Source: Macrostomum hystrix (lineage: Eukaryota; Animalia; Platyhelminthes). From it: 64,000 bases of DNA. The DNA lies in contig CATNEN010000011.1 of NCBI GenBank assembly GCA_950097015.1, positions 2,542,001 to 2,606,000 on the forward strand. Direction: 5' to 3'. The notes beneath the pieces are model-generated. The model was given only the letters and a program-made list of their open reading frames with translations. It was not told where the DNA came from and made no database searches. The position numbers were made by a program, and so were the translations under genes. Of this stretch, positions 25,921 to 54,680 are shown in pieces (the first letter of the stretch is position 1; each line of letters starts with the position of its first letter).

Positions 25921-26210
25921 ATTGATTACACCTGCCCCAATTGGGTCAGATGTGCAGCCGACAGCACAGCCGCAGCTAATGCGCGGCGCATCTGAAGGCT
26001 GCGTACAGCTGTTCAGTCCACGGACTGGGGGGACGCCACACCCACCTTCAATTATCCCAGCTGATGCTGGTACCCATTTAACAGCTGGGTGAACTGAAGC
26101 AATGCAGAGTTAAGTGTCTTGCTAAAGGACGCAAATTGTTCCAGTGGAGTCGGGAATCGAACCCCCGACCTTCAAGTCGTGGGTCCGACGCCCTAACCAC
26201 TAGGCTACAA
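25921..26210 (-). mobile_element. Full-length SINE family 1 (tRNA head + CORE-like domain) with 12-bp target-site duplication
   Basis: A-box tagcctagtgg and B-box ggttcgattcc. It is flanked by cctctctacata at 25909-25920 and 26211-26222 and is near-identical to the copy at 44345. Confidence 0.9.
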
Positions 26211-29633: not shown

Positions 29634-32149
29634 ATGGCAGATAATAGTTCAGAAGTCAAGTCCCCAGCCACTAGCAACAATGATGCCACAGATGCTGGCA
29701 GCAGTGGCCTCTTCAAGCGATCTTCAGTTGCTGCAGTGCAGCCATATCCGCAGCCTCTGCCACCTAGTGCACTAGAGGACATTGATCTGGAATACCGCAT
29801 GGATTATCCAAATCGTGGATACTGCCTGATTTTCAATCATGTATGATGTCACATTTGATCTATATCTATTAAATTAAATAATATGTATTGATATTTATAT
29901 TATTTGCTTCGCTTAAAGCATTGCTACTTGTCTAATTGATACTTTTCATTCTTTTTCTAATCAACCTGACCTCCCATCACCTTCATCTATCAGGCTTGCC
30001 ACCATCCTTGTTGATTTTCTTGCTGTTTCATCTTGCCTAATCCCTCTCCCCAACTCGCCTTAATTATCTTGTATTCACCCATTCCCTCTTGCTTTCAGCC
30101 ATTCCCTCTTGCTTTCACCTATTCCTTCTTATCCTATCCCTCTCACCTTCACCCATTCCCTCTCAACTTCACCCATTTCCTCTCACCTTCACCCATTTCC
30201 TCTCACCTTCACCCTATCACTCTCACCTTCACCCATTCCCTCTCACCTTCACCCATTTCCTCTCACCTTCACCCATTTCCTCTCACCTTCACCCATTCCC
30301 TCTCGCCTTCACCCATTTCCTTTCACCTTCACCCATTTCCTCTCACCTTCACCCATTCCTTCTCACCTTGACCCATTCCCTCTCACCTTGACCCATTTCC
30401 TCTCACCTTCACCCATTTCCTCTCACCTTCACCCATTCCTTCTTGTCCTATCCCTCTTGCTTTCACCCTATCCCTCTCGCCTTCACCATATCCCTCTCGC
30501 CTTCACCAAATCCCTCTGGCCTTCACCCTATCCGTCCTTCCTTTTTCCAAATCCTTCTCGCCTTCACTATTTCAATGTGGCCCTCTCGCTGTGTCCTTAA
30601 ATATTCCTAATAAAATATCTAAATCTCAGCTGTACTGTTCGCCCTCAAGGTGAACTTCCGCAGCACGACTCGTCAGCCGGCTCGGGACGGCTCAGACATT
30701 GATGCCAGCGGTCTCGAAAAAACTTTTAAACGCCTCGGCTTCGACGTGCGCAACTTTCGCGACCTGTCCGCTAGCGATCTGGCCGACGTTCTTAGGGAGT
30801 ATCGGATTAAGAATCACTCGGACAATGACTGCCTTGTTGTTATTATCCTGTCACACGGCTACGAAGGACATTTCTACACCCATGACCGGGATCTGCCCAT
30901 AGACTATGTGGTGCAGCACTTCAAACCCGATGCTTGTCCGACACTGGCTGGCAAGCCTAAACTGTTCTTCATTCAGGTTTGACAATTCGGCTCTTAAGTA
31001 TTAAGAATCATAATTCATAATGCTTAATTTAATAGGCTTATTCACAATAGCAGTTGTTATAATCACTCAACAATAATCCGATAGTCCCAGACCGTTTAAT
31101 CCATGTTCCTAATTCTATAATCCTCATTTTCCAGCCATAGTAATCCATTCTCATAATTATTTAATCCTCATTTTCCAGCTATATTAATCCATTCTCATAA
31201 TTATTTAATCCTCATTTTCCAGCCATATTAATCCATTCTCATAATTCTTTAATCCTCATTTTCCAGCCATAGTAATCCATTCTCATAATTATTTAATCCT
31301 CATTTTCCAGCCATAGTAATCCATTCTCATAATTATTTAATCCTCATTTTCCAGCCATAGTAATCCATTCTCATAATTATTTAATCCTCATTCTCCAGCC
31401 ATAATAATCCACTTTCCTAATTCTATAATCGTCATTTTCCAGCCATATTAATCATTTTTCCTAATTCTATATTCCTCATTTTCCAGCCATATTAATCCAT
31501 TTTGTTAATTTTATTATCCTCAAATCAGTTATCCTAGTTCATGAATCCGATCAAGGCACTTCCCAGGCCATAAATTCTGAACATTTTAATCCTAATATCG
31601 TAATCTTTTCAACCTCGCTTGAAACTACGTTTCTAAGCCCTTAATTCTCAAATTGTAATCTCCCTAATCCTTTAATTTATCATTTCAATTTCATTCTTGG
31701 TTCTTAAACCAACGAAATTTCGCTATTTTTATGACTATTTAATACAGGCCTGCCGCGGTGACAATTTCGACCCCGGCTTTGAAGTTGCCGACAGTGGCGA
31801 CAGCGACGACTTGGACGCCCTGCCGCCGTCCGGTGGGGCCGCCTCCTCGGGTCGTCGCCTGCGCGTCCCGCTCGAGTCAGATTTCTTCTTCTTCTATTCA
31901 ACGCCGCCTGGATATTTCAGCTGGCGCAACAGTCAGCGCGGCAGCTGGTTCGCCCAGCAGCTGACGGCGCTGCTGGATAGACACGGTGACAAGCTGGAGT
32001 TGCAGCACCTGATGCTTATGGTTCAACGCCTGGTGGCTTCGGGCTACGCCAGCGACACTGGGGACTCCAGCAGTACAGGTATGAAACAGATGCCCGTGAC
32101 TGTGTGCCAACTGCGTAAGCTGCTCTACTTTCGACCTAAGAGTCGTTGA
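29634..32149 (+). CDS. Effector caspase (caspase-3/7-like). Exons 29634-29840, 30650-30976, 31748-32149
   Basis: Motifs YRMDYPNRGYCLIFN, R.GSDID, ILSHG (catalytic His), KPKLFFIQ|ACRG (QACRG split by an intron), SWRNSQRGSWF and KQMP..LRKLLYF. The prodomain is short, with DxxD sites DATD and DDLD. Confidence 0.92.
30120..30500. repeat. 20-bp pyrimidine-rich minisatellite (tctcaccttcacccatttcc), caspase intron 1
   Basis: Direct periodicity. Confidence 0.9.
31120..31510. repeat. 44-bp minisatellite, caspase intron 2
   Basis: cctcattttccagccatagtaatccattctcataattatttaat units. Confidence 0.9.
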
Positions 32150-37020: not shown

Positions 37021-37988
37021 TTATTCCATCTTGACGCCTCTGGCCGCCCACGCCTGACGATTCTTCTGCACAATGCGCTCCAGTAGGTCGCGAAACGCCT
37101 TGTCCACACCTTCGCCAGTGGCCGCCGATGTCTCGTAGACTTTGAGCTTGTGCTTGGCTGCTGCTTTTGCCGCGTCGGCTGGTGTTACCTGGACAAAAGT
37201 TAGTTAGTAAATTACACGTAATAGTAATAAAAAATTACACCTGCCCAAATTGGGCCCGACATGTTGCGGGGCGCCTCTGAAAAAAGCGTACGAACAGTCG
37301 TTCAGTCCATGGACTGGTGGGATGCCACACCCAGCCTTAACTACCCCAGCTGATGTTGGTACTCATTTAACAGCTGGGTGAACTCAGAGTAAAGTGGCTT
37401 TCTAAAGGACACAAATTGTTCCAGTAGAATCAAGAATCGAACCCCCGACCTTCAAGTCGCTCTAACCACTAGGCTACAACTCCAAATCGAGTATTTACGC
37501 CTGCATCTATAACTGGTAACCTGTCTTTTCTCCTTGAGATCGGATTTGTTGGCTAACAGAATGATTTCCGGCATCGTAGATGGCTGCTGCTGCTGCTGCT
37601 GCTGCTGCTGCCCTGGCCCAGTGCAGTACTGGGCAATCTCTCGCATCCAAGCGTCTAGATTCGACACCGATTTTGAGTCGGTCAGATCCAGGGTGAGCAG
37701 GATTCCGTCGCTCCCAGCGTACAGTTCGTTGCGAACCTCCACATACTCAGGATAGCCGGACAGGTCCCACAGGTTGACGCGTAGGTCAACGCCGTCAACT
37801 CTGAACACCTTGAAGCCGTAGTCTGCGCCCACCGTTGGCTGGTAACCTGGCGAGAAGCGGCTGTCGCAGAAGTGTTTGATTAGGCACGTCTTGCCGGAGC
37901 CGGGGTAACCAGCTGACACCAGCTTGACCCAGGCTAAACAGCTGGTGAAGTCGGGCAAATCTTGCTGCGTCGACAAATCTCTGCTCAT
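37021..37988 (-). CDS. RJL-family small GTPase (DNAJC27/RBJ-like, no J domain). Exons 37988-37521, 37188-37021
   Basis: G1 GYPGSGKT, then CLIKHFC..RF, G2 PTVGADYG, G3 WDLSGY, EVRNELY (RJL-like), G4 NKSD and G5 ETSA. Exon 2 reads VTPADAAKAAAKHKLKVYETSAATGEGVDKAFRDLLERIVQKNRQAWAARGVKME*. Confidence 0.78.
37240..37480 (-). mobile_element. SINE family 1 copy in the RJL intron
   Basis: gaatcgaacccccgaccttcaagtcg, cagctgggtgaact and acacctgcccaaattggg match the family. Confidence 0.8.
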
Positions 37989-39996: not shown

Positions 39997-42900
39997 TCAT
40001 CCTTTGAATACATCCGGAGCCGAGAACAGAATGGCGCAGGTTGCGATGACGGTGAAGCAGGAGAACAGGATGAGGCACAGCCGGTCCACAACTCTGGCTG
40101 CGAACTTCCACTCGCTGCTTACTTCACCGTCGGCAACGTCGTCTGAAATTTTCTGCGTTATGATGCGCAACTCGTGCACAATGGACTCCAGGTCGCTGCG
40201 GACACTGCAGGGCTGCTGTTGTAGTAGAAACTGGCCATTCGGATGCTGCTGCTGCTGCTGCTGCTGCTGTTGTTGCTGCACGTCGTCATAAACTGGCGGC
40301 AGTCTGGAAGTGGCCGCCGCAGCCGCGGCTCGGAAATTGTCCTCCAAATCCAGGACGTTCGCCAGCAGCGACTTCGACGATCGTTCGCGCAGTTCCAGCG
40401 GCGCCGCGTGCTCCGCGGCCAGCAGCTCCCGGTGATGCTCGGCGAAACCGGAGGCTGCCGAGGCGCTGGAGCGGAAGGCGCCCATCTTTGAGCCACCGCC
40501 GCCGCCACCTGCGGCGAAACTGCTGCGAGTTCGGCGACGTCGCAATCGTATCGGCTCAGCGTCTTCGTCTCTACGCAGCCGGCGCATGCAGAGAATGCTG
40601 GCCAGATAGGTGCAAATGAACTGACGGACCTGCAGATTGGGTTGGACACAGCACCTGTTAGACAGGAGCCCTACCTGTTAAACAGGATCCCTACCTGTTA
40701 GACAGGAACCCTACCTGTTAGTCAAGCACTCTACTTGTTATACAGGTGTTAGGCTAACGACTAAGTTAAGAATGTCACGTGTTAGACAAGTACTTTTAGT
40801 AATTTTTAGGAGGTGTTTTATTATTGACTCACCCAGTTAGGAATGGGGTGTGATTCAGCATCCCTGTGATGATAATTGAGCACAATGACAGTGAAGACAA
40901 CCGATAAGCTGCACATGATCATTGTGCAAGCAAAGTACATGCCTGAAATTTTCAAAGGATTCGAAATATTTCTTTAATTTGATACCATAGTGATCGATTT
41001 GATAATAAGGCGATAAAATCTGCTTAGTAAAAGTACAATGATGTTCAATTACTAACCAACATTATTCTAGGACACTTTTGTAGGAAAACGCATTTCATGG
41101 TACTTTCAGTAGATGTCCGTTGTTAAATATTAAAACAAGAAAATAATGAAGTTTTAAGATCGTAAATTCAACACGAGTATAGGGAGTGTCTGAAATGGCT
41201 GGTAGGCCATGGTGTCGTGCTTGGCCAGGTACCGCTAGCCAATTAGGACCTCAGAGAACTATGTTACTTAGAAAAGGTTTCGGAGGCTGGCTTCGCTGAA
41301 AACGGCGCTACGGAGATAAACTTATATTTTTGGAAGTTTATTCAAAGCTCTTTTTCTGTGTAACTAACCCAAAATGTTGCTCCGATAAATTTTACAAAGA
41401 TTTCAGCTTTTAAAGTTTATCTTTATACTATCTTATTCTTTACTAACGGTAGGACTACCAAGCCATGTTGCCGCCCGTTTTAATACCAGGTCGAATTCCC
41501 CCCTGAAGTTATTTTTGGCAGCGGCTGAATGGTAACAGCGTTGAGTGGTGTCTAATTGGTTGACAGACTAGCCGATGGTGTCCTGTGGTTGAGCTGAGCC
41601 TAGTATTTAGGTTTGATCAGTGAAATGGGAGACATTCGCGTCAGGGTGTCCATAGTGCCTAGTTCAGTTCCATCTGTTGTAGCCTTTGGAGGTCCAGCAA
41701 ATCCGTCTAGATAAAGGTAGGTGACCACCGAAGACGGAGATGATGCAGGCACATTCGGGTGCCATGCTAATCAATTTTGAAGGCCTGGCAAGGCCGCACT
41801 GAGGCGCAGTGCTAATTCGTGTATAGGGGTGTATGAAATACATAAGCGCTTATAGGAAAAATCTGACCTTAGGCCAGAACGATTGAATGTCTCGACGGTC
41901 TTGAAATAGTTGTTTTTATAAATTAAGCTTGATAAAAAGCTAATACAATCAAATAAAGTCGCGAAATTTGTCCCAGAAAGATCGTGTAAATTTTTTAATT
42001 CCCGTAGTGCATTTTCGGCGAAAATAAACCAGCCTCTTAAACTTTTCTAAGAAACATCGATTTCCCGTTCCGACCAATTTTAAAAAATGCTAAAGCGGAT
42101 TTTGCTCACCGATCACTGGTACAGAGTCTGAGGTAGGCGGCATGGCCTCAGCAACCATCATTAGAAAAACGGTCAACGATAGTAGGATAGTCACACCTGC
42201 GTCGCGTTAACAATCAAAATAATTTTCTACATTTGACCCGTCACAATTTGTTATAATTCCATTAATGAACACCGGAAATTGTGGACCAGCGAGCAAGCGA
42301 CAACAAAAAAACGAAAAAAACAAAAAAACAAAAAAGTAAATACAACACCGAAAATTTCACCTTAATTCTCGCGTGTAAAAATGCATTCCAGCAAGGTTCT
42401 TACCAATGAGAGGCAGAGCCTCAGATGTCTGCGGCATTGCGTCCGCCACGAGCAGTAAAAACATGGTCAGCGATAGCAGAATTGTGACGCCTGCGTCGAA
42501 ATTTAGTTAATTGTGCTTTGTGCGTTGTGCGTTGTGTAATGAGTTCAATTTTATCTTAGCGAAACATTCTGAGGAGGTTCAGTTTCTGGTTTGAGTTTCC
42601 TAGAAACATGCAATTTTTTAAAAATTTCTGCCGTTTTAAAACTCAAGCCCGTTTTTCCTTCTACTGATTCGAGAAAATTTCGCTGTTGCTTCATTCTATC
42701 CCTTATCTAATCTCTCGCCGTTGCTTCATTCTATCCCTTATCAAATCTCTCGCCATTGCTTCATTCTATCCCTTATCAAATCTCTAGCCGTTGCTACATT
42801 CTATCCCTTATCCAATCTCTCGCCGTTGCTACATTCTATCCCTTATCTAATCTCTCGCCGTTGCTTCATTCTATCCCTTATCAAATCTCTCGCCGTTGCT

Positions 42901-45900
42901 TCATTCTATCCCTTATCAAATCTCTCGCCATTGCTTCATTCTATCCCTTATCAAATCTCTAGCCGTTGCTACATTCTATCCCTTATCCAATCTCTCGCCG
43001 TTGCTACATTCTATCCCTTATCTAATCTCTCGCCGTTTCTTCATTCTATCCCTTATCCAATCTCTCGCCGTTGCTTCATTCTATCCCTTATCAAATCTCT
43101 AGCCGTTGCTACATTCTATCCCTTATCCAATCTCTCGCCGTTGCTACATTCTATCCCTTATCTAATCTCTCGCCGTTTCTTCATTCTATCCCTTATCAAA
43201 TCTCTAGCCGTTGCTACATTCTATCCCTTATCCAATCTCTCGCCGTTGCTACATTCTATCCCTTATCTAATCTCTCGCCGTTTCTTCATTCTATCCCTTA
43301 TCAAATCTCTCGCCGTTGCTACATTCTATCCCTTATCTAATCTCTCGCCGTTGCTACACTCTATCCCTTATCAAATCTCTCGCCGTTGCTACATTCTATC
43401 CCTTATCAAATCTCTCGCCGTTGCTACATTCTATCCCTTATCTAATCTCTCGCCGTTGCTACATTCTATCCCTTATCTAATCTCTCGCCGTTGCTACATT
43501 CTATCCCTTATCAAATCTCTCGCCGTTGCTACATTCTATCCCTTATCTAATCTCTCGCCGTTTCTTCATTCTATCCCTTATCAAATCTCTAGCCGTTGCT
43601 ACATTCTATCCCTTATCTAATCTCTCGCCGTTGCTACATTCTATCCCTTATCTAATCTCTCGCCGTTGCTACATTCTATCCCTTATCAAATCTCTCGCCG
43701 TTGCTACATTCTATCCCTTATCTAATCTCTCGCCGTTGCTACATTCTATCCCTTATCAAATCTCTCGCCGTTGCTTCATTCTATCCCTTATCCAATCTCT
43801 CGCCGTTGCTACATTCTATCCCTTATCAAATCTCTCGCCGTTGCTTCATTCTATCCCTTATCAAATCTCTCGCCGTTGCTTCATTTTATCCCTTATCAAA
43901 TCTCTCGCCGTTGATTCATTCTATCCCTTATCAAATCTCTCACCGTTGCTCCATTCTATCCCTTATCCAATCTCTCGCCGTTGTTTTATTATTTTTCTTA
44001 TCCAATCTCTCGCCGTTGCTTTATTATTTTTCTTATCCAATCTCTCGCCGTTGCTTTATTATTTTTCTTATCCAATCTCTCGCCGTTGCTTCATTCTATC
44101 CCTTATCCAATCTCTTCCCGTTGCTTTATTATTTTTCTTATCCAATCTCTCGCCGTTGCTTCATTCTATCCATTATCCAATCCCTCGCCGTGGGATATTT
44201 TCTTTAATTTTTTAGTAAGCTTGGCGCGAAGTTTAAGCTGCAATATCAGCGATCAGTTATAGTCAGTGGATTATATCGAATATGCATTGTATTTTTGGTA
44301 TGATTGCGCATTTAAAAAATATAGTTGTGAAAAAATTCCAGAAGAGGTTGTAGCCTAGTGGTTAGGGCGTCGGACTCACGACTTGAAGGTCGGGGGTTCG
44401 ATTCCCGACTCCACTGGAACAATTTGCGTCCTTTAGCAAGACACTTAACTCTGCATTGCTTCAGTTCACCCAGCTGTTAAATGAGTACCAGCATCAGCTG
44501 GGATAATTGAAGGTGGGTGTGGCGTCCCCCCAGTCCGTGGACTGAACAGCTGTACGCAGCCTTCAGATGCGCCGCGCATTAGCTGCGGCTGTGCTGTCGG
44601 CTGCACATCTGACCCAATTGGGGCAGGTGTAATCAATTATTATCAATTATTATTATTGTATGCAAGCATTGAAATTGGTGATACCAGTTGCTAACTGTTT
44701 TTGTTTTACTGGCCCGTAGATTAAAACAGTCTGGAAAACGATTTACTGTCGCCATTGTTAATATAATTCAAGTAATAACAGCTGGAAAGGGGTAGGCTTA
44801 TATGCTTGATTAATACTCTTTAGGTTTAGTTTATTTATTAAGTCATCGTAGAGTAAAGTCCTAATGAAATTACTGCACTTATCTAATAGATAATGCGACT
44901 ACACGATTTCAAAGAGGCAAAATTTCTGTCTAACAGGTCAGTATCCATATCTAACAGGTCAGTATCCATATCTAACAGGTCAGTTCCCATATCTAACAGG
45001 TCAGTATCCATATCTAGCAGGTCAGAACCCATATCTAACAGGTCAGTATCCATATCTAGAAGGTCAGAACCCATATCTAATAGGTCAGTATCCATATCTA
45101 ACAGGTCAGAACCCATATCTAACAGGTCAGTATCCATATCTAGAAGGTCAGAACCCATATCTAACAGGTCAGTATCCATATCTAACAGGTCAGTATCCAT
45201 ATCTAACAGGTCAGAACCCATATCTAGCAGGTCAGTGTCCATATCTAACAGGTCAGTATCCATATCTAACAGGTCAGTATCCATATCTAACAGGTCAGTG
45301 TCCATATCTAACAGGTCAGAACCCATATCTAGCAGGTCAGTGTCCATATCTAACAGGTCAGAACACATATCTAACAGGTCAGTGTCCATATCTAACAGGT
45401 CAGTGTCCATATCTAACAGGTCAGTATCCATATCTAACAGGTCAGTGTCCATATCTAACAGGTCAGTGTCCATATCTAACAGGTCAGTATCCATATCTAA
45501 CAGGTCAGTATCCATATCTAACAGGTCAGTGTCCATATCTAACAGGTCAGTATCCATATCTAACAGGTCAGTATCCATATCTAACAGGTCAGTATCCATA
45601 TCTAACAGGTCAGTATCCATATCTAACAGGTCAGTGTCCATATCTAACAGGTCAGTATCCATATCTAACAGGTCAGTATCCATATCTAACAGGTCAGCAT
45701 CCATATCTAGCAGGTCAGTATCCATATCTAGCAGGTCAGAACCCATATCTAACAGGTCAGTATCCATATCTAACAGGTCAGAACCCATATCTAGCAGGTC
45801 AGTGTCCATATCTGACTGGTTTTTATGTTCATTATGTTGCGTCATTGCGGTAAATCACAGGCACAATACAACAACCGCCTCACCTAGCGATATCTTCTCT

Positions 45901-48900
45901 CCAGCATCCGGTGGCAGCATGAAAGTTAGCAGGGCCATAGATGAGATCAGAACGCATGGAATGATGAGGTTGAAGCCGTAGTACAGCGTCCTCCGGCGTA
46001 TCTTGATCCAGTACTTCAGATCGACGAATGGAAACGGACAGCAGTCGTACACTAAGGCGGTTCTAATTCCGGGCATTCCTGAGATAAACAAATGTTTTTT
46101 ATCTGCGTAATTTATGATGCACATACAAATTTGACAATTCATTTATTCCAGAAAGTCAGCTTTGACCCCTGTTCCTTCAGGAAGTCCGGTTTCATCCCCT
46201 GTTCCTTCAGGAAGTCTGGTTTCATCCCCTGTTCCTTCAGGAAGTCCGGTTTCATCCCCTGTTCCTTCAGGAAGTCCGGTTTCATCCCCTGTTCCTTCAG
46301 GGAGTCTGGTTTCATCCCCTGTTCCTTCAGGAAGTCTGGTTTCATCCCCTGTTCATTCAGGAAGTCCGGTTTCATCCACTGTTCCTTCAGGAAGTCGGAA
46401 GTCTGGTTTCATCCCCTATTCATTCAGGAAGTCCGGTTTCATCCCCTGTTCCTTCAGGAAGTCTGGTTTCATCCCCTGTTCCTTCAGGAAGTCTGGTTTC
46501 ATCCTCTGTGCCTTCAGGAAGTCGGAAGTCTGGTTTCATCCCCTATTCATTCAGGAAGTCCGGTTTCATCCCCTGTTCCTTCAGGAAGTCTGGTTTCATC
46601 CCCTGTTCATTCAGGAAGTCCGGTTTCATCCCCTGTTCCTTCAGGAAGTCTGCTTTCATCCCCTGTTCATTCAGGAAGTCTGGTTTCATCCCCTGTGCCT
46701 TCAGGAAGTCCGGTTTCATCCCCTGTTCATTCAGGAAGTCCGGTTTCATCCCCTGTTCCTTCAGGAAGTCTGGTTTCATCCCCTGTTCCTTCAGGAAGTC
46801 TGCTTTCATCCCCTGTTCCTTCAGGAAATATGGTTTCATCCCCTGTTCCTTCAGGAAGTCTGGTTTCATTCCCTGTTCCGTCAGGATGTCTGGTTTCATC
46901 TCCTGTTCCTTCAGGAAGTCCGGTTTCATCCCCTGTTCCTTCAGGAAGTCTGCTTTCATCCCCTGTTCCTTCAGGAAGTCCGGTTTCATCCCCTGTTCCT
47001 TCAGGAAGTCCGGTTTCATCCCCTGTTCCTTCAGGAAGTCCGGTTTCATCCCCTGTTCCTTCAGGAAGTCCGGTTTCATCCCCTGTTCCTTCAGGAAGTC
47101 CGGTTTCATCCCCTGTTCCTTCAGGGAGTCTGGTTTCATCCCCTGTTCCTTCAGGAAGTCTGGTTTCATCCCCTGTTCATTCAGGAAGTCCGGTTTCATC
47201 CACTGTTCCTTCAGGAAGTCGGAAGTCTGGTTTCATCCCCTATTCATTCAGGAAGTCCGGTTTCATCCCCTGTTCCGTCAGGATGTCTGGTTTCATCCCC
47301 TGTTCCTTCAGGAAGTCTGGTTTCATTCTTTGTTCCTTCAGGAAGTCTGGTTTCATTCTTTGTTCCTTCAGGAAGTCTGGTTTCATTCTTTGTTCCTTCA
47401 GGAAGTCTGGTTTCATCCCCTGTTCCTTCAGGAAGTCTGGTTTCATCCCCTGTTCCTTCAGGAAGTCTGGTTTCATCCCCTGTTCATTCAGGAAGTCTGG
47501 TTTCATCCCCTGTTCCGTCAGGATGTCTGGTTTCATCCCCTGTGCCTTCAGGAAGTCTGCTTTCATCCCCTGTTCCTTCAGGAAGTCTGGTTTCATTCCC
47601 TGTTCCTTCAGGAAGTCTGCTTTCATCCCCTGTTCCTTCAGGAAGTCTGGTTTCATCCCCTGTTCCTTCAGGAAGTCTGGTTTCATCCCCTGTTCCTTCA
47701 GGAAGTCTGGTTTCATTCCCTGTTCCTTCAGGAAGTCTGCTTTCATCCCCTGTTCCTTCAGGAAGTCTGCTTTCATCCCCTGTTCCTTCAGGAAGTCTGG
47801 TTTCATCCCCTGTTCCTTCAGGAAGTCTGGTTTCATCCCCTGTTCCTTCAGGAAGTCTGCTTTCATTCCCTGTTCCTTCAGGAAGTCTGGTTTCATCCCC
47901 TGTTCCTTCAGGAAGTCTGCTTTCATCCCCTGTTCCTTCAGGAAGTCCGGTTTCATCCCCTGTTCCTTCAGGAAGTCTGGTTTCATCCCCTGTTCCTTCA
48001 GGAAGTCCGGTTTCATCCCCTGTTCCTTCAGGAAGTCTGGTTTCATCCCCTGTTCCTTCAGGAAGTCTGGTTTCATCCCCTGTTCCTTCAGGAAGTCTGG
48101 TTTCATCCCCTGTTCCTTCAGGATGTCTGGTTTCATTCCCTGTTCCTTCAGGAAATATGGTTTCATCCCCTGTTCCTTCAGGAAATGATATTTAAACTGC
48201 GTTTTTTATATTAAAACTAAAATTATCCCTATGTTAATGTTAATTAATGTTATTAACAATTAACAAACGGTTTTCGAATCGATAATCAATACTTCTTCAA
48301 AAGAGTTATCGGTAATATATATAGTGTAATTTGTGTACGGGTGCTGTCTGTGTGCTTGTGTCGTATTTTCATTGATATTCGCTCAGGCGCTTAAGTTGAA
48401 TAATAATTTTGTGTCCTCAAATCGGTGACATTTTTGCTGCTGGAACGCTTTTGTGGTGCGACAAGACCGGAAAAATAATGAATTTTTTCTTTCTTAGAAA
48501 TTTCTGATTCAATTTTTAACAAATTTCGTGCTACGAGTAGTAACATCAAGCAACAATTAACTAATTAAAAGAAATATGTTTAAATATTGACGTATTCTAT
48601 TTAGCAATTTTTCCAGAATAGATGAATATATAAAAATATATGAAAACCATAAAAAAGTAAAAAGACTAACATTTAAGAAAGTAACGAAGTTTTGGAAAAA
48701 GTAACTTTTTTCAATATTTTAAATATTTCACTTATTTCACTTATTTTGTGCAAGCCGTGGAGTATAAAATATTTTACGCATATGCGACAGAAGTAGCTTT
48801 GCTTGCCGTCCATAATTTCCCGACTTTTGTTATAATTAAATCGCTTAATTATAACAAAACAATTTGAAACGAATCTGCCGCATACCAAAGCTAACTTTCT

Positions 48901-51900
48901 CTCCAGCATCCGGTGGAATGATGAAGCTTAACAAAGCTAAAGACGACAGAAACGAGCACGGACCAACCAGATTAAATACGTAATACAGCTTGCGCCTACG
49001 GATGAGCAGGTGAAATTTTAAATCGATGAACGGATGGGGACAGCAGTCGTAGATGATGCTGGTTCGGATCCCGGGCAGTCCTGCAAGCGTGTGGTGTCAA
49101 ACTGTTGTTGAGTCTATAGCGTAAAAAATTGATAATTTCTGGCATCTTTTCTTGACGTCAGCATCGTCGTCGAGATTCAGCGATTCATTCAGAAAAATGA
49201 AAAATGTGAAAAATTTGACATAGCCCGTGATCTTTCTACAGTTCAGCTGATGTTCTAGATGACACCTACCTGTAGTCCATGAAGTTGGGCCAGACTTACA
49301 GGCAGTGGCACAACTGCTGCTATTACAAATTTGTTTCCAAACCTGGTGTACAACCGTTCAGTCCATGGACTGGGGGGCTGCAACATCGACCCAAATTTTA
49401 CAGCTAAAAAATGTTGAATACAAGAAAAAGGTTAAGAGATTTTCTCTGCTACGCCACGTACCCAACACCCAATAATCCCAGCTAATGCTGGCACCCGTTT
49501 ATCAGCTGGGTGAACTGAATCAATGCAGAGTTAAGTGTCTTGCTAAATGGCACAAATTGTTTCAGTCGAGTCGGGAATCGAACCCTTGACCTTCAAGTCC
49601 GACGCCCTAACCACCTGGGTTTTTTAAATAGGCATTTGAGCAGGAACTTACCCTCTAGATTCCATTCGCCACTCTCAACGTAGGTGGTGACATCTCCTGA
49701 GCCCTTCTCAGAGCAGCCCTCCGGGTCCTGCAGGATCTTCTCAGTCGTATCCAAGCTGGCGTTGTCGCATTTGAATCTCAAATCAACTGTGCCGCCATCG
49801 TATGACCAAGAGCCGAATTTCAATTCGCACTTTTGCGTATCAAATGGAAACCAGGTAATATCTATTTTGCAGGTAGATTTGAACATTCCAGGCGGTATGT
49901 AGTTCATTGAACCCGAGTGATTTATGACCACATTAGTCGGGAATGTGCCATCGAATTTCTCATCGGCACTGGAAGTTTGAAAAGCAATTTGTTGACTAAT
50001 TCTCAGTTTTAATTACGCGCGTATTTCGATTAAATTATTAGATTACTACTTTAAGTAGCGCAACTCGCCTATTGTAAAGTAGAATGTCAGGTTTCCAAAC
50101 GCGACTCGGATCGATATTAATCTTCGTGATGTTGCCATATTCAGCTGGATTCCATTTGAAATGATAGTCGCTCCACGTCTGGAATTTTAAATAAACGTTT
50201 ATTGCTCTTGTCTTTCATTACATCTGTTATTTTTAGTTGTGTCATTTTTATTTCCAGATCTAACAAGATGCTTTATGCACATGCGTTCGCGTACATCTTA
50301 CGCTGTACGTAACAGATGCTATTTTTAGTAACAGGACAACCGTGCCTAGGGTCCTCCTCTGAGTCATCTGACGTCATATTCTATTTTTAGAAAATGTGTT
50401 GCCTTATGTAATGAACGAATATTTTAGGTTGAGTTTATGTGCTTTGTGTAAGATTTCTGCTACGTCTGCAGCAGTAAGCTGTGCTTAAACTTCAGGTAGG
50501 TGAAATTAGCTCAAAAATACTTATTGAACACATAAACATTACTGTCTGACCATGAATCGAAGGAAAAAAATAATAACGCTAAGCAAACATTAGATCCGAG
50601 CCACTCTGCATAATTTAGGCTTGCTGAAGCTCAAGAAAGGCCAACATTAATTGAGTCTGATCAAACATTATATCAGCTGTGTAGTCGATAAGTATTAGTA
50701 CTCAGGAGGCAGCTCACCAGATCCAGCCAGATGTTTGAGAACAGAATCTGGTTCTTTTCGTCCTGCATAAAAATGGGAAGCGGGAGTTTACAGATGGGAT
50801 CATTTTGCATTAGATTTACATGATTAACGCAAGTCAGTAATTCAGTCAATCACTGTAAGCATTATCAGTTTATGCTATACAAAGCCCAGAAAGCATGTTT
50901 TGATTCAGTATTTTTCTGCTAGCATTTCTTCCAACTAACTACGAGCTAAAAAAGCAAATAAATGATTTGACTAAAGTTTGATATGGCATTCATTTCTGTT
51001 CTCTCGTATGCTTTGCACCAGCTTGTGAACCATTGCTACAAAAGTTACGAGTATGTTACACCAATGGTTTAGCTGAGGCATTCATGCAAAACAGATTGAG
51101 TTGGCAGTGATTCCTTCAGCAAACTGTTCCATACCATTGCTCAAATGCACAGCTGACTGGAAAAGTATTTCTTAGTAAGATTTATTGGATAGCAAAAATT
51201 TGGATTAAAGAAACCAGCTGTTACTCGTACATATACTTTCACGTTTCAGAACTTTCAAAAAACTAAATTTTTGTTAGATAAACCGAAAAATAATTAAAAC
51301 GAATCGAGTTAATACGAAATTGTGTTACTAAGAACTGGATTCTTCTAAAAGCGCAATGTTTCTACGAACTGGATTCTTCTAAAAGCGCAATGTTTCTAAG
51401 AACTGGAGCTTCTAAAAGCGCAATGTTTCTAAGAACTGGATTCTTCTAAAAGCGCAATGTTTCTAAGAACTGGATTCTTCTAAAAGCGCAATGTTTCTAA
51501 GAACTGGATTCTTCTAAAAGCGCAATGTTTCTAAGAACTGGATTCTTCTAAAAGCGCAATGTTTCTAAGAACTGGATTCTTCTAAAAGCGCAATGTTTCT
51601 AAGAACTGGAGCTTCTAAAAGCGCAATGTTTCTAAGAACTGGATTCTTCTAAAAGCGCAATGTTTCTAAGAACTGGATTCTTCTAAAAGCGCAATGTTTC
51701 TAAGAACTGGATTCTTCTAAAAGCGCAATGTTTCTAAGAACTGGATTCTTCTAAAAGCGCAATGTTTCTAAGAACTGGATTCTTCTAAAAGCGCAATGTT
51801 TCTAAGAATTGGATTCTTCTAAAAGCGCAATGTTTCTAAGAACTGGATTCTTCTAAAAGCGCAATGTTTCTAAGAACTGGATTCTTCTAAAAGCGCAATG

Positions 51901-52649: not shown

Positions 52650-52914
52650 GAACCTGTATGAACTTCTGTTCCGATAGATTTTTTCTAACAGGATCGTATA
52701 TATTCTGCTGCAACAGTATTGCTTTTTTCTAAGTTTGACGAAAAAGAAATACAAACTATAGAGATGCTATTTTTTCAGTAACAAAAGAGCTTTAACTTTC
52801 TTGAACGCTTTAGGGTTCAAAAACAATTTATAAAAAAAAACTTCTAAATTAACACAAAAATTCAAATTTTTCATTATTGAAAAGTTTCGGGGTTAAGAAG
52901 CTTCGCGGTTGAAA

Positions 52915-53810
52915 AGTTTCAGGCTGACAATTAGTTACGGAGTTCACAAGTTTCAGGCTGACAATTAGTTACGGAGTTCACAAGTTTCAGGCTGACAATT
53001 AGTTACGGAGTTCACAAGTTTCAGGCTGACAATTAGTTACGGAGTTCACAAGTTTCAGGCTGACAATTAGTTACGGAGTTCACAAGTTTCAGGCTGACAA
53101 TTAGTTACGGAGTTCACAAGTTTCAGGCTGACAATTAGTTACGGAGTTCACAAGTTTCAGGCTGACAATTAGTTACGGAGTTCACAAGTTTCAGGCTGAC
53201 AATTAGTTACGGAGTTCACAAGTTTCAGGCTGACAATTAGTTACGGAGTTCACAAGTTTCAGGCTGACAATTAGTTACGGAGTTCACAAGTTTCAGGCTG
53301 ACAATTAGTTACGGAGTTCACAAGTTTCAGGCTGACAATTAGTTACGGAGTTCACAAGTTTCAGGCTGACAATTAGTTACGGAGTTCACAAGTTTCAGGC
53401 TGACAATTAGTTACGGAGTTCACAAGTTTCAGGCTGACAATTAGTTACGGAGTTCACAAGTTTCAGGCTGACAATTAGTTACGGAGTTCACAAGTTTCAG
53501 GCTGACAATTAGTTACGGAGTTCACAAGTTTCAGGCTGACAATTAGTTACGGAGTTCACAAGTTTCAGGAATGACAATTAGTTACGGAGTTCACAAGTTT
53601 CAGGCTGACAATTAGTTACGGAGTTCACAAGTTTCAGGCTGACAATTAGTTACGGAGTTCACAAGTTTCAGGCTGACAATTAGTTACGGAGTTCACAAGT
53701 TTCAGGCTGACAATTAGTTACGGAGTTCACAAGTTTCAGGCTGACAATTAGTTACGGAGTTCACAAGTTTCAGGCTGACAATTAGTTACGGAGTTCACAA
53801 GTTTCAGGAT
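52915..53810. repeat. Near-perfect 34-bp minisatellite (agtttcaggctgacaattagttacggagttcaca)
   Basis: About 26 almost invariant copies. Confidence 0.97.
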
Positions 53811-54680
53811 TGACAAATTTCGAGTTTGAGTAGTTTTGCGGCTGACAAGTTTCGGGATAAAGAAGTCGTTTTTGGGTTTGAGAAGTTTCAGGTTGACAAG
53901 TTTCGGGGTTGACAAGTTTCGAGATTGACAAGTTTCGGGATTGACAAGTTTCCGGATTGACAAGTTTCGGTATTGACAAGTTTCGGGATTGACAAGTTTC
54001 CGGATTGACAAGTTTCGAGATTGACAAGTTTCGGTATTGACAAGTTTCGGGATTGACAAGTTTCGGTATTGACAAGTTTCGGTATTGACAAGTTTCGGTA
54101 TTGACAAGTTTCGGTATTGACAAGTTTCGGGATTGACAAGTTTCCGGATTGACAAGTTTCGAGATTGACAAGTTTCGGTATTGACAAGTTTCGGGATTGA
54201 CAAGTTTCGGTATTGACAAGTTTCGGGATTGACAAGTTTCCGGATTGACAAGTTTCGAGATTGACAAGTTTCGGGATTGACAAGTTTCCGGATTGACAAG
54301 TTTCGAGATTGACAAGTTTCGGTATTGACAAGTTTCGGGATTGACAAGTTTCGGTATTGACAAGTTTCGGTATTGACAAGTTTCCGGATTGACAAGTTTC
54401 GAGATTGACAAGTTTCGGGATTGACAAGTTTCGGGATTGACATGTTTCGTGATTGACAAGTTTCGGGATTGACAAGCTTCGGGATTGACAAGCTTCGGGA
54501 TTGACTAGTTTCGGGATTGACTAGTTTCGGGATTGACAAGTTTCCGGATTGCGAAGTTTCGGGATTGAAAAGTTTCCGGATTGAGAAGTTTCGAGGTTGA
54601 CAAGTTTCGGGATAGACAAGTTTCGGGGTTGACAAGCTTCGGGATTAACAAGTTTCAGGATTAACAAGTTTCAGGATTAA
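53810..54680. repeat. 16-bp minisatellite (gattgacaagtttcgg)
   Basis: Direct periodicity, abutting the 34-bp array. Confidence 0.95.

Follow-up and report, generated by a model that had tools for sequence, protein, structure and literature searches.

The gene for subunit alpha6 of insect nicotinic acetylcholine receptors (nAChRs) carries two sets of mutually exclusive exons, 3a/3b for loop D and 8a/8b/8c for the second transmembrane helix (M2), which have been kept for ~300 million years with one version dominant (PMC1919356; PMC6393475). Under the name of tandem duplicated exon substitution, ancient, homologous ion-channel exons of the same length have been described that swap one structural module (e.g. 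PMC9741552, PMC5740500). Here we analysed a 64,000-nucleotide stretch of the genome of the flatworm Macrostomum hystrix (contig CATNEN010000011.1, positions 2,542,001 to 2,606,000; henceforth referred to as ‘the window’, with positions counted from its first letter), which holds an nAChR subunit gene of the alpha7 type with two tandem copies, 7a and 7b, of the exon for loop C and the first transmembrane helix (M1). We consider it likely that 7a and 7b are mutually exclusive alternative exons of this gene, with 7b as the default and 7a as a regulated minor form; the evolutionary evidence in the sequences supports this reading of the pair well, although at the RNA level it is unproven.

Alternative exons are a main source of nicotinic receptor diversity in insects, and the choice of alpha6 exon affects insecticide sensitivity. 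The locus in the window resembles insect alpha6 in that an alpha7-related gene contains tandem homologous exons of equal length and phase, one version of which is better conserved and far more used, and in that the exon duplication is old (in insects, older than the orders compared). The M2 exon of the window gene, present as 8a and 8b, is the same 87-nt exon that is triplicated in insect alpha6. However, the alternatives in the insect gene are of exon 3 (45 nt, loop D) and exon 8 (87 nt, M2), whereas in the window gene the duplication affects the 195-nt exon that encodes loop C and M1, of which descriptions of insect alpha6 give a single copy. Here the pair is found in a flatworm and again in annelids, and, whereas use of the minor insect copies is documented by reverse transcription PCR, 7a is known here from gene sequence alone. 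By analogy, the principle may be that of the exon-3/exon-8 choice of insect alpha6, applied to a different exon beside an insect-like M2 pair.

The best structural match of both copies is vertebrate alpha7 (human CHRNA7), which 7b matches at nearly every M1 position. The vertebrate alpha7 gene has exon sizes of 110/195/87/110 nt, like the host gene, and a single exon 7; to our knowledge, its alternative forms are cassette or partial-duplication products (CHRFAM7A), with no mutually exclusive M1 pair among them. In its ancient homologous exons of the same length, which swap one module, the pair is like known cases of tandem duplicated exon substitution, but any exclusivity of its use could rest neither on frame disruption nor, in Macrostomum, on a short intron (751-2807 nt). 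In the full-text literature we found no description of an alternative exon 7 in nicotinic receptors, nor of alternative exons in flatworm or lophotrochozoan nicotinic receptors, and a survey of lophotrochozoan nAChRs makes no mention of splicing.

Results

Two copies of exon 7 in an alpha7-type receptor gene

Database searches and comparisons were made exon by exon or with natural database proteins, and the host gene (exon coordinates in Table 1) is by its sequence an alpha7-type nAChR subunit gene. Pfam assigns Neur_chan_LBD to the constitutive exon upstream of the pair (henceforth exon 6) and Neur_chan_memb to 7a, 7b, 8a, 8b and the last exon. Exon 6 contains the Cys-loop (C-x13-C), and both copies of exon 7 contain the vicinal Cys-Cys of loop C that marks the alpha type and the cation-type inner ring (GEK before M2). 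Both copies match alpha7 structures with E values of 1e-16 to 1e-21, and the best matches in the PDB are all alpha7 (79.6 bits for 7b and 62.4 bits for 7a), the next best subunits other than alpha7 scoring 54 and 47 bits, respectively. By these scores 7b is canonical and 7a divergent. Among public proteins, the alpha7 models of Macrostomum lignano are nearest. Adjoining the pair is a second tandem pair, 8a and 8b, which lie 207 nt apart; a second exon for loop D was not seen.

In the direction of transcription 7a comes first and 7b second, with an intron of 2807 nt between them. Both exons have the same phase, with a split Gly codon at the start, of which they contain the last two bases, and another split codon at the end, of which they contain the first. 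They have 124 of 195 bases in common (63.6%) and agree at 41 of 64 full codons; the 23 differences become 23 of 65 when the common split Gly is counted. The base differences fall 25/11/35 on the three codon positions, the third being the highest, and the divergence corresponds to a dN of 0.31 and a dS of ~3 (Nei-Gojobori method, NG86). Judged on these sequences, the resemblance of 7a to 7b is far beyond chance. Outside the exons, the introns that flank 7a and 7b show no similarity between the copies, and the duplication is therefore old. The splice donors are TTG|GTATGC for 7a and TAG|GTGAGG for 7b, the former being farther from the consensus.

Both copies align without gaps to positions 178-241 of the human alpha7 chain, contain PPDAGEK and YDCC, and have Phe at the second loop C Tyr position of alpha7. 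They differ before M1 (RRRK in 7a, RRRT in 7b) and within it (VGPCSF in 7a, IIPCVL in 7b). The preliminary description of the pair, made from the letters of the window, was right in taking the source for a flatworm and proved accurate on these points: the count of ~23 in 65 differing residues agrees with the codon count, each motif it gave (YxCC, GEK, RRRK/RRRT, VGPCSF/IIPCVL and the quoted loop C letters) is present, the Phe in both copies is seen in the alpha7 alignment, and the 2-kb minisatellite of 30-bp units that it placed between the copies was recovered by Tandem Repeats Finder at 46166-48184.

Both copies are kept and constrained in paralogs

Four further alpha7-type genes (henceforth paralogs B to E, the window gene being A) were found when the genome was searched in six frames with 7a. 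Paralogs B (contig C39) and C (contig C24) have the order exon 6-7a-7b-8a-8b-exon 9, as in the window gene, with the four cassette exons intact (195 or 87 nt, AG/GT) and 7a-7b introns of 751 and 1333 nt. Paralog D (contig C37) retains 7b, 8a and 8b, and its 7a has decayed: between exon 6 and 7b a relic (L037:5776-5886) has a recognisable M1 half and has lost the loop C half, carries an in-frame stop, no longer has RRRK and reads GEM in place of GEK. Paralog E (contig C7) is without 7a; its cassette exons are limited to one of the 7b type and one of the 8a type. Among the three intact 7a copies (A, B and C) the proportion of synonymous differences (pS) is 0.76-0.89, that is, saturated, and that of nonsynonymous differences (pN) is 0.13-0.17, compared to a pN of 0.12-0.13 among the matching 7b copies. 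Since pN is alike while synonymous sites are saturated, 7a is as constrained as the used exon 7b, and on this measure purifying selection acts on both copies. Paralog D is an example of how 7a decays once the constraint is lifted.

The same pair in other species

When the three 7a copies served as profile in an exhaustive search, proteins with two exon-7 stretches ranked at the top. In M. lignano, the orthologues of the window gene (A0A1I8HTP0, here P0003, and its near-copies A0A1I8H5A2 and A0A1I8H9W9) have 7a and 7b in tandem; tallied on P0003, 58 of 64 residues of 7a and 60 of 64 of 7b are identical to the window copies. A further M. lignano model, P0158, is the orthologue of paralog B and reads exon 6-7a-8b-exon 9. 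The annelid Capitella teleta (CAPTEDRAFT_221893) has an exon with RRRK and a divergent M1 (henceforth K-type) followed by one with RRRT and a canonical M1 (henceforth T-type), each of 195 nt with AG/GT sites, and the same holds for a 205-kb ENA contig that is probably from an annelid; the intron between the two measures 150 nt in Capitella and 75 nt in the ENA contig. Capitella has a single, 8b-like exon 8. Overall, homologous exons in tandem that agree in length and phase and have their own splice acceptors and donors are found in the window gene, in paralogs B and C and in Capitella. The preliminary description had proposed looking for the duplication in flatworm or spiralian alpha7-like genes, where it is indeed present (M. 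lignano, Capitella teleta and the probable annelid contig); the frame-disrupting mutations that it had considered for 7a orthologs are absent from the M. lignano copies, which are intact, and decay was seen only in paralog D.

Ten positions split K-type from T-type exons across the flatworm and annelid copies, and the K-then-T order is common to both phyla. A maximum-likelihood tree built from 31 copies of the exon unites, with 96/96 support, Macrostomum 7a, the first copies of the annelids and the genes with a single K-type exon; all T-type copies, human alpha7 included, lie on the other side. The approximately unbiased (AU) test on the 64 columns rejected neither the grouping of flatworm 7a with the annelid first copies, as expected from a single origin (p 0.19), nor the grouping of all Macrostomum copies, as expected from separate origins (p 0.44). 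As far as these sequences go, it is firm that the pair predates both the divergence of paralogs A, B and C and that of M. hystrix and M. lignano; for its ultimate source, we lean towards a single origin before flatworms and annelids diverged.

Two further groups of sequences were noted alongside. In nAChR genes on marine metagenome contigs L042, L044 and L045/L046 the sole exon 7 is K-type (RRRK ... GEKISF), and in the tree these exons fall with the first copies of the annelids and with 7a of Macrostomum. Two tandem copies of exon 7 are also present in the barnacle Amphibalanus amphitrite (KAF0300447.1, P0006), the isopod Armadillidium vulgare (KAL7640434.1, P0008) and in P0005 and P0007, which together make up a set of alpha7-type models and contigs from crustaceans and other arthropod-like sources; the crustacean duplication looks independent because both of its copies group with canonical arthropod exons.

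The conserved difference lies in M1 and its junctions

At 12 positions, every Macrostomum 7a copy is distinct from every 7b copy. The strand that precedes loop C has one of them (Ser/Ala), and the other 11 are in the pre-M1 stretch, M1 or the start of M2, namely the pre-M1 residue (K or S in 7a, T in 7b), eight positions in M1 (211, 216, 219, 220, 221, 224, 228 and 231 in alpha7 numbering) and the 1' and 3' residues after GEK (V.F in 7a, I.L in 7b). None of the 12 is in loop C. The idea that the eight M1 positions form one helical face was rejected, as they are not clustered on a face (resultant 0.33, P 0.30).

The distribution of these positions bears on the alternative that the pair mainly provides two ligand-binding faces through loop C, and with them two agonist pharmacologies, which is how the preliminary description had summarised the locus. 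Between the window copies the tip of loop C (His/Phe and Ile/Val) and the flanking strands do differ, and the M. lignano orthologue has Tyr in 7a and Phe in 7b at the second loop C aromatic. However, these differences are specific to single genes: the residue that is His in 7a and Phe in 7b of the window gene is H, Y, F or L within both types in the paralogs and M. lignano, and, when the 34 variable positions are divided, type-specific residues occupy 1 of 17 in the extracellular part and 11 of 17 in the pre-M1, M1 and M2-start part (Fisher p 0.0008). As a conserved theme, two ligand-binding faces are thus not borne out, and we regard a mainly pharmacological role of the pair as unlikely. Because the type-specific positions lie outside loop C, the conserved theme is instead an alternative M1 with its junctions, to which the gene-specific loop C differences (H/F and I/V in the window gene) could add a pharmacological effect on agonist binding.

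Transcripts and the choice between the copies

The RNA sample consisted of three small runs from one study (44-48 million letters each), kept as contigs, which were aligned to positions 48190-50900, a range that ends short of the 2-kb minisatellite and 7b. The host gene is expressed, because spliced contigs match its exons: in all three runs contigs skip 49969-50068 and 50179-50717 with no mismatches on the exons. The first of these introns, by whose removal exon 6 is joined to exon 4 (the 110-nt exon), is on the minus strand of the GC-AG type (donor GCGAGT), and its removal was seen in contigs of each run. In contigs of two of the three runs, exon 6 continues into an exon that is not 7a.

Several observations weigh against the reading of 7a and 7b as mutually exclusive exons. 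No contig from the three runs carries 7a in the aligned range. Record 6 of run X1 (371 nt) lies on 49651-49824, and its other 197 letters are off 7a save for a 20-letter piece, which is identical to 7b; record 19 of run X3 leaves exon 6 at 49651, and its remaining 85 letters are found nowhere in 48190-50900; and the X3 contig that touches 7a in two short pieces has its best fit in 7b of paralog B (92% and 90%). The M. lignano models are partly ab initio (three of them have 7a and 7b in tandem, and one has all four cassette exons) and show intact exons in a second species, not splicing, so that P0158 is weak evidence. There are also gaps on the side of mechanism: nonsense-mediated decay is unable to enforce exclusivity because 195 is divisible by 3, no 11-mer is common to the introns of paralogs A, B and C and blastn matched them only at short interspersed nuclear elements (SINEs), and a search for docking/selector pairing found no complementary stem above shuffled controls except a SINE pair. 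Overall, nothing was found in Macrostomum that enforces exclusivity, as the 7a-7b introns measure 751-2807 nt, all sites are GT-AG and the exons are in frame. Steric exclusion is plausible only in the probable annelid contig, where the 75-nt intron could act in this way.

The length of X1 record 6 equals 173 nt of exon 6, 195 nt and 3 nt, and from this length and the exact 20-mer we infer that exon 6 is joined to 7b, the joint itself lying outside the aligned stretch. The contig data say that 7b is the major form and do not imply that 7a is silent; as contigs from small runs lose rare forms, the RNA result speaks to the major form only. Word searches for short or mid-length proteins from RNA contigs with 7a returned no Macrostomum fragments, only UniRef models and unrelated contigs. 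In the preliminary description the pair was one locus with two alternative exon versions; the anatomy and the conservation in paralogs, Macrostomum species and annelids strongly support this, whereas the use of 7a is the part that found no support, as no RNA contig carries it. A 212-nt stretch inside the 7a-7b intron (48311-48522), unique in the genome, is matched exactly by an RNA contig of one run (X3, depth 3.4). It lies 364 nt from 7a, which is uncovered, and could be pre-mRNA, a small separate transcript or an exon.

The lack of contigs with 7a would also be expected if 7a of the window gene were a silent relic, left out of every transcript and not yet decayed. In keeping with this, paralogs D and E show that 7a can be lost, and the 7a donor departs further from the consensus than that of 7b. 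However, three paralogs have an intact 7a despite saturation at synonymous sites, with a pN equal to that of 7b, and three M. lignano copies are intact as well; decay is already far advanced in the only copy that is clearly out of use, that of paralog D; and a 64-codon frame in neutral sequence would stay open with a chance of ~5% per copy. We therefore think it improbable that the window copy is such a relic.

Only one exon 7 gives a working subunit, because both together add a second M1 helix. Their joint inclusion, by which the subunit would have loop C and M1 twice, would keep the frame open (195 = 3 x 65) and is how the UniRef models P0003, P0153, P0154 and P0155 and the Capitella model P0156 are written, but it is very improbable, since the second M1 would invert the topology of M2-M4 (we know of no pentameric channel with such a layout), X1 record 6 (371 nt) has space for one exon 7 only, and gene predictors often chain in-frame duplicated exons, P0155 even running through the intron between 8a and 8b. 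Both exon-7 copies are chained in P0003, P0153, P0154, P0155 and P0157 (M. lignano) and P0156 (Capitella), and both exon-8 copies also in P0155 and P0157; these chained public models are very likely an annotation artefact of in-frame alternative exons.

Repeats and neighbouring genes in the window

The coordinates of the exons and of the repeats around them are given in Table 1. A tRNA-derived SINE in the intron before 7a and an inverted copy in the intron after 7b bracket the two exons; they include a 27-nt perfect complement and provide the sole strong complementarity in the gene. This pair could pair in the pre-mRNA and loop out the cassette, but is probably incidental. RNA contig depth over the SINE runs to thousands, reflecting many copies genome-wide; further copies lie at 26049, 27574, 37385 and 55409, and Rfam found only the tRNA-like part of the SINE over 44000-50500.

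The 30-bp minisatellite was rejected as a functional element, since the window holds ~25 arrays in its 64 kb and the introns of paralogs B and C (751 and 1333 nt) are too short for a 2-kb array. These ~25 separate arrays have units of 16-46 bp and reach 3.5 kb; four lie in introns of the host gene and two more just upstream (52914-54678), and many yield long artefactual frames in the list of open reading frames (ORFs). Neighbouring genes recognised by eye are a caspase (SHG ... QACRG in two ORFs) at 30650-32149 (plus strand) and a small Rab-like GTPase with a poly-Gln stretch at 37452-37988 (minus strand).

Table 1. Exons 6 to 8b of the alpha7-type gene and repeats in the introns around exon 7 (positions in the window).
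Feature	Positions	Strand	Remarks
Exon 6, upstream constitutive exon (loops B and F, Cys-loop; ends GEWNLE + first base of split Gly codon)	49652-49968	minus	donor GTAAGT; Pfam Neur_chan_LBD E 4e-24
Exon 7a, K-type (loop C, pre-M1 RRRK, M1, GEKVSF)	48886-49080	minus	195 nt; AG/GT; divergent first copy
Exon 7b, T-type (loop C, pre-M1 RRRT, alpha7-like M1, GEKISL)	45884-46078	minus	195 nt; AG/GT; default copy (probable)
Exon 8a (M2, first copy)	42404-42490	minus	87 nt; AG/GT; Pfam Neur_chan_memb; kept in paralogs B, C, D, E
Exon 8b (M2, second copy)	42110-42196	minus	87 nt; AG/GT; kept in paralogs B, C, D
tRNA-derived SINE copy, intron before 7a	49470-49599		inverted relative to copy at 44380-44509 (intron after 7b); 89% over 130 nt
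30-bp minisatellite	46166-48184		66.6 copies, 91% matches; Tandem Repeats Finder; fills most of 7a-7b intron
21-bp minisatellite	44929-45820		42.5 copies; starts 64 nt past 7b donor

Discussion

The anatomy of the pair, the conservation and constraint of both copies and the expression of the gene with an exon 7 other than 7a are shown. That 7a is spliced in, that the two copies are used exclusively, and every functional consequence of their exchange we infer from these observations. In the model that we favour, each mRNA would take either 7a or 7b to link the constitutive exon at 49652-49968 to the M2 exon. Of the two, 7b would be the default, as the form with the canonical alpha7-like M1 and the only one so far observed, and 7a would be the regulated minor form, probably confined to certain cells or stages. 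The swap would turn RRRT into RRRK at the pre-M1 junction and would change some eight residues of M1 as well as the 1' and 3' positions at the inner pore mouth, leaving loop C nearly unchanged. Its effects would be expected in gating or desensitisation, conductance, sensitivity to modulators at membrane sites or subunit packing, rather than mainly in agonist recognition. Combined with the choice between 8a and 8b, one gene could encode four channel cores.

A more far-reaching proposal, which we put forward tentatively and with less confidence than the model itself, is that the alternative K/T module for M1 arose once, in an alpha7-like gene before the flatworm-annelid split, and has been kept for more than 500 million years as a mutually exclusive switch of the channel core; together with the M2 switch in Macrostomum it would give four pore/gating variants per gene in at least three genes. 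At a practical level, the analysis flags an annotation error, in that public models from M. lignano, Capitella and two crustaceans chain both copies and so have two M1 helices. In these spiralian animals, what appears to be swapped is M1 together with the inner mouth of the pore and the junction that joins M1 to the ligand-binding domain. If 7a is used, the pair would be a natural experiment on the contribution of M1 to gating in alpha7-type receptors and to the action of drugs that bind between membrane helices, and, if the K/T switch indeed has a single origin, it would be a counterpart, at the level of splicing, of the diversity of subunits in this class of receptors, some of which are drug targets in parasitic relatives.

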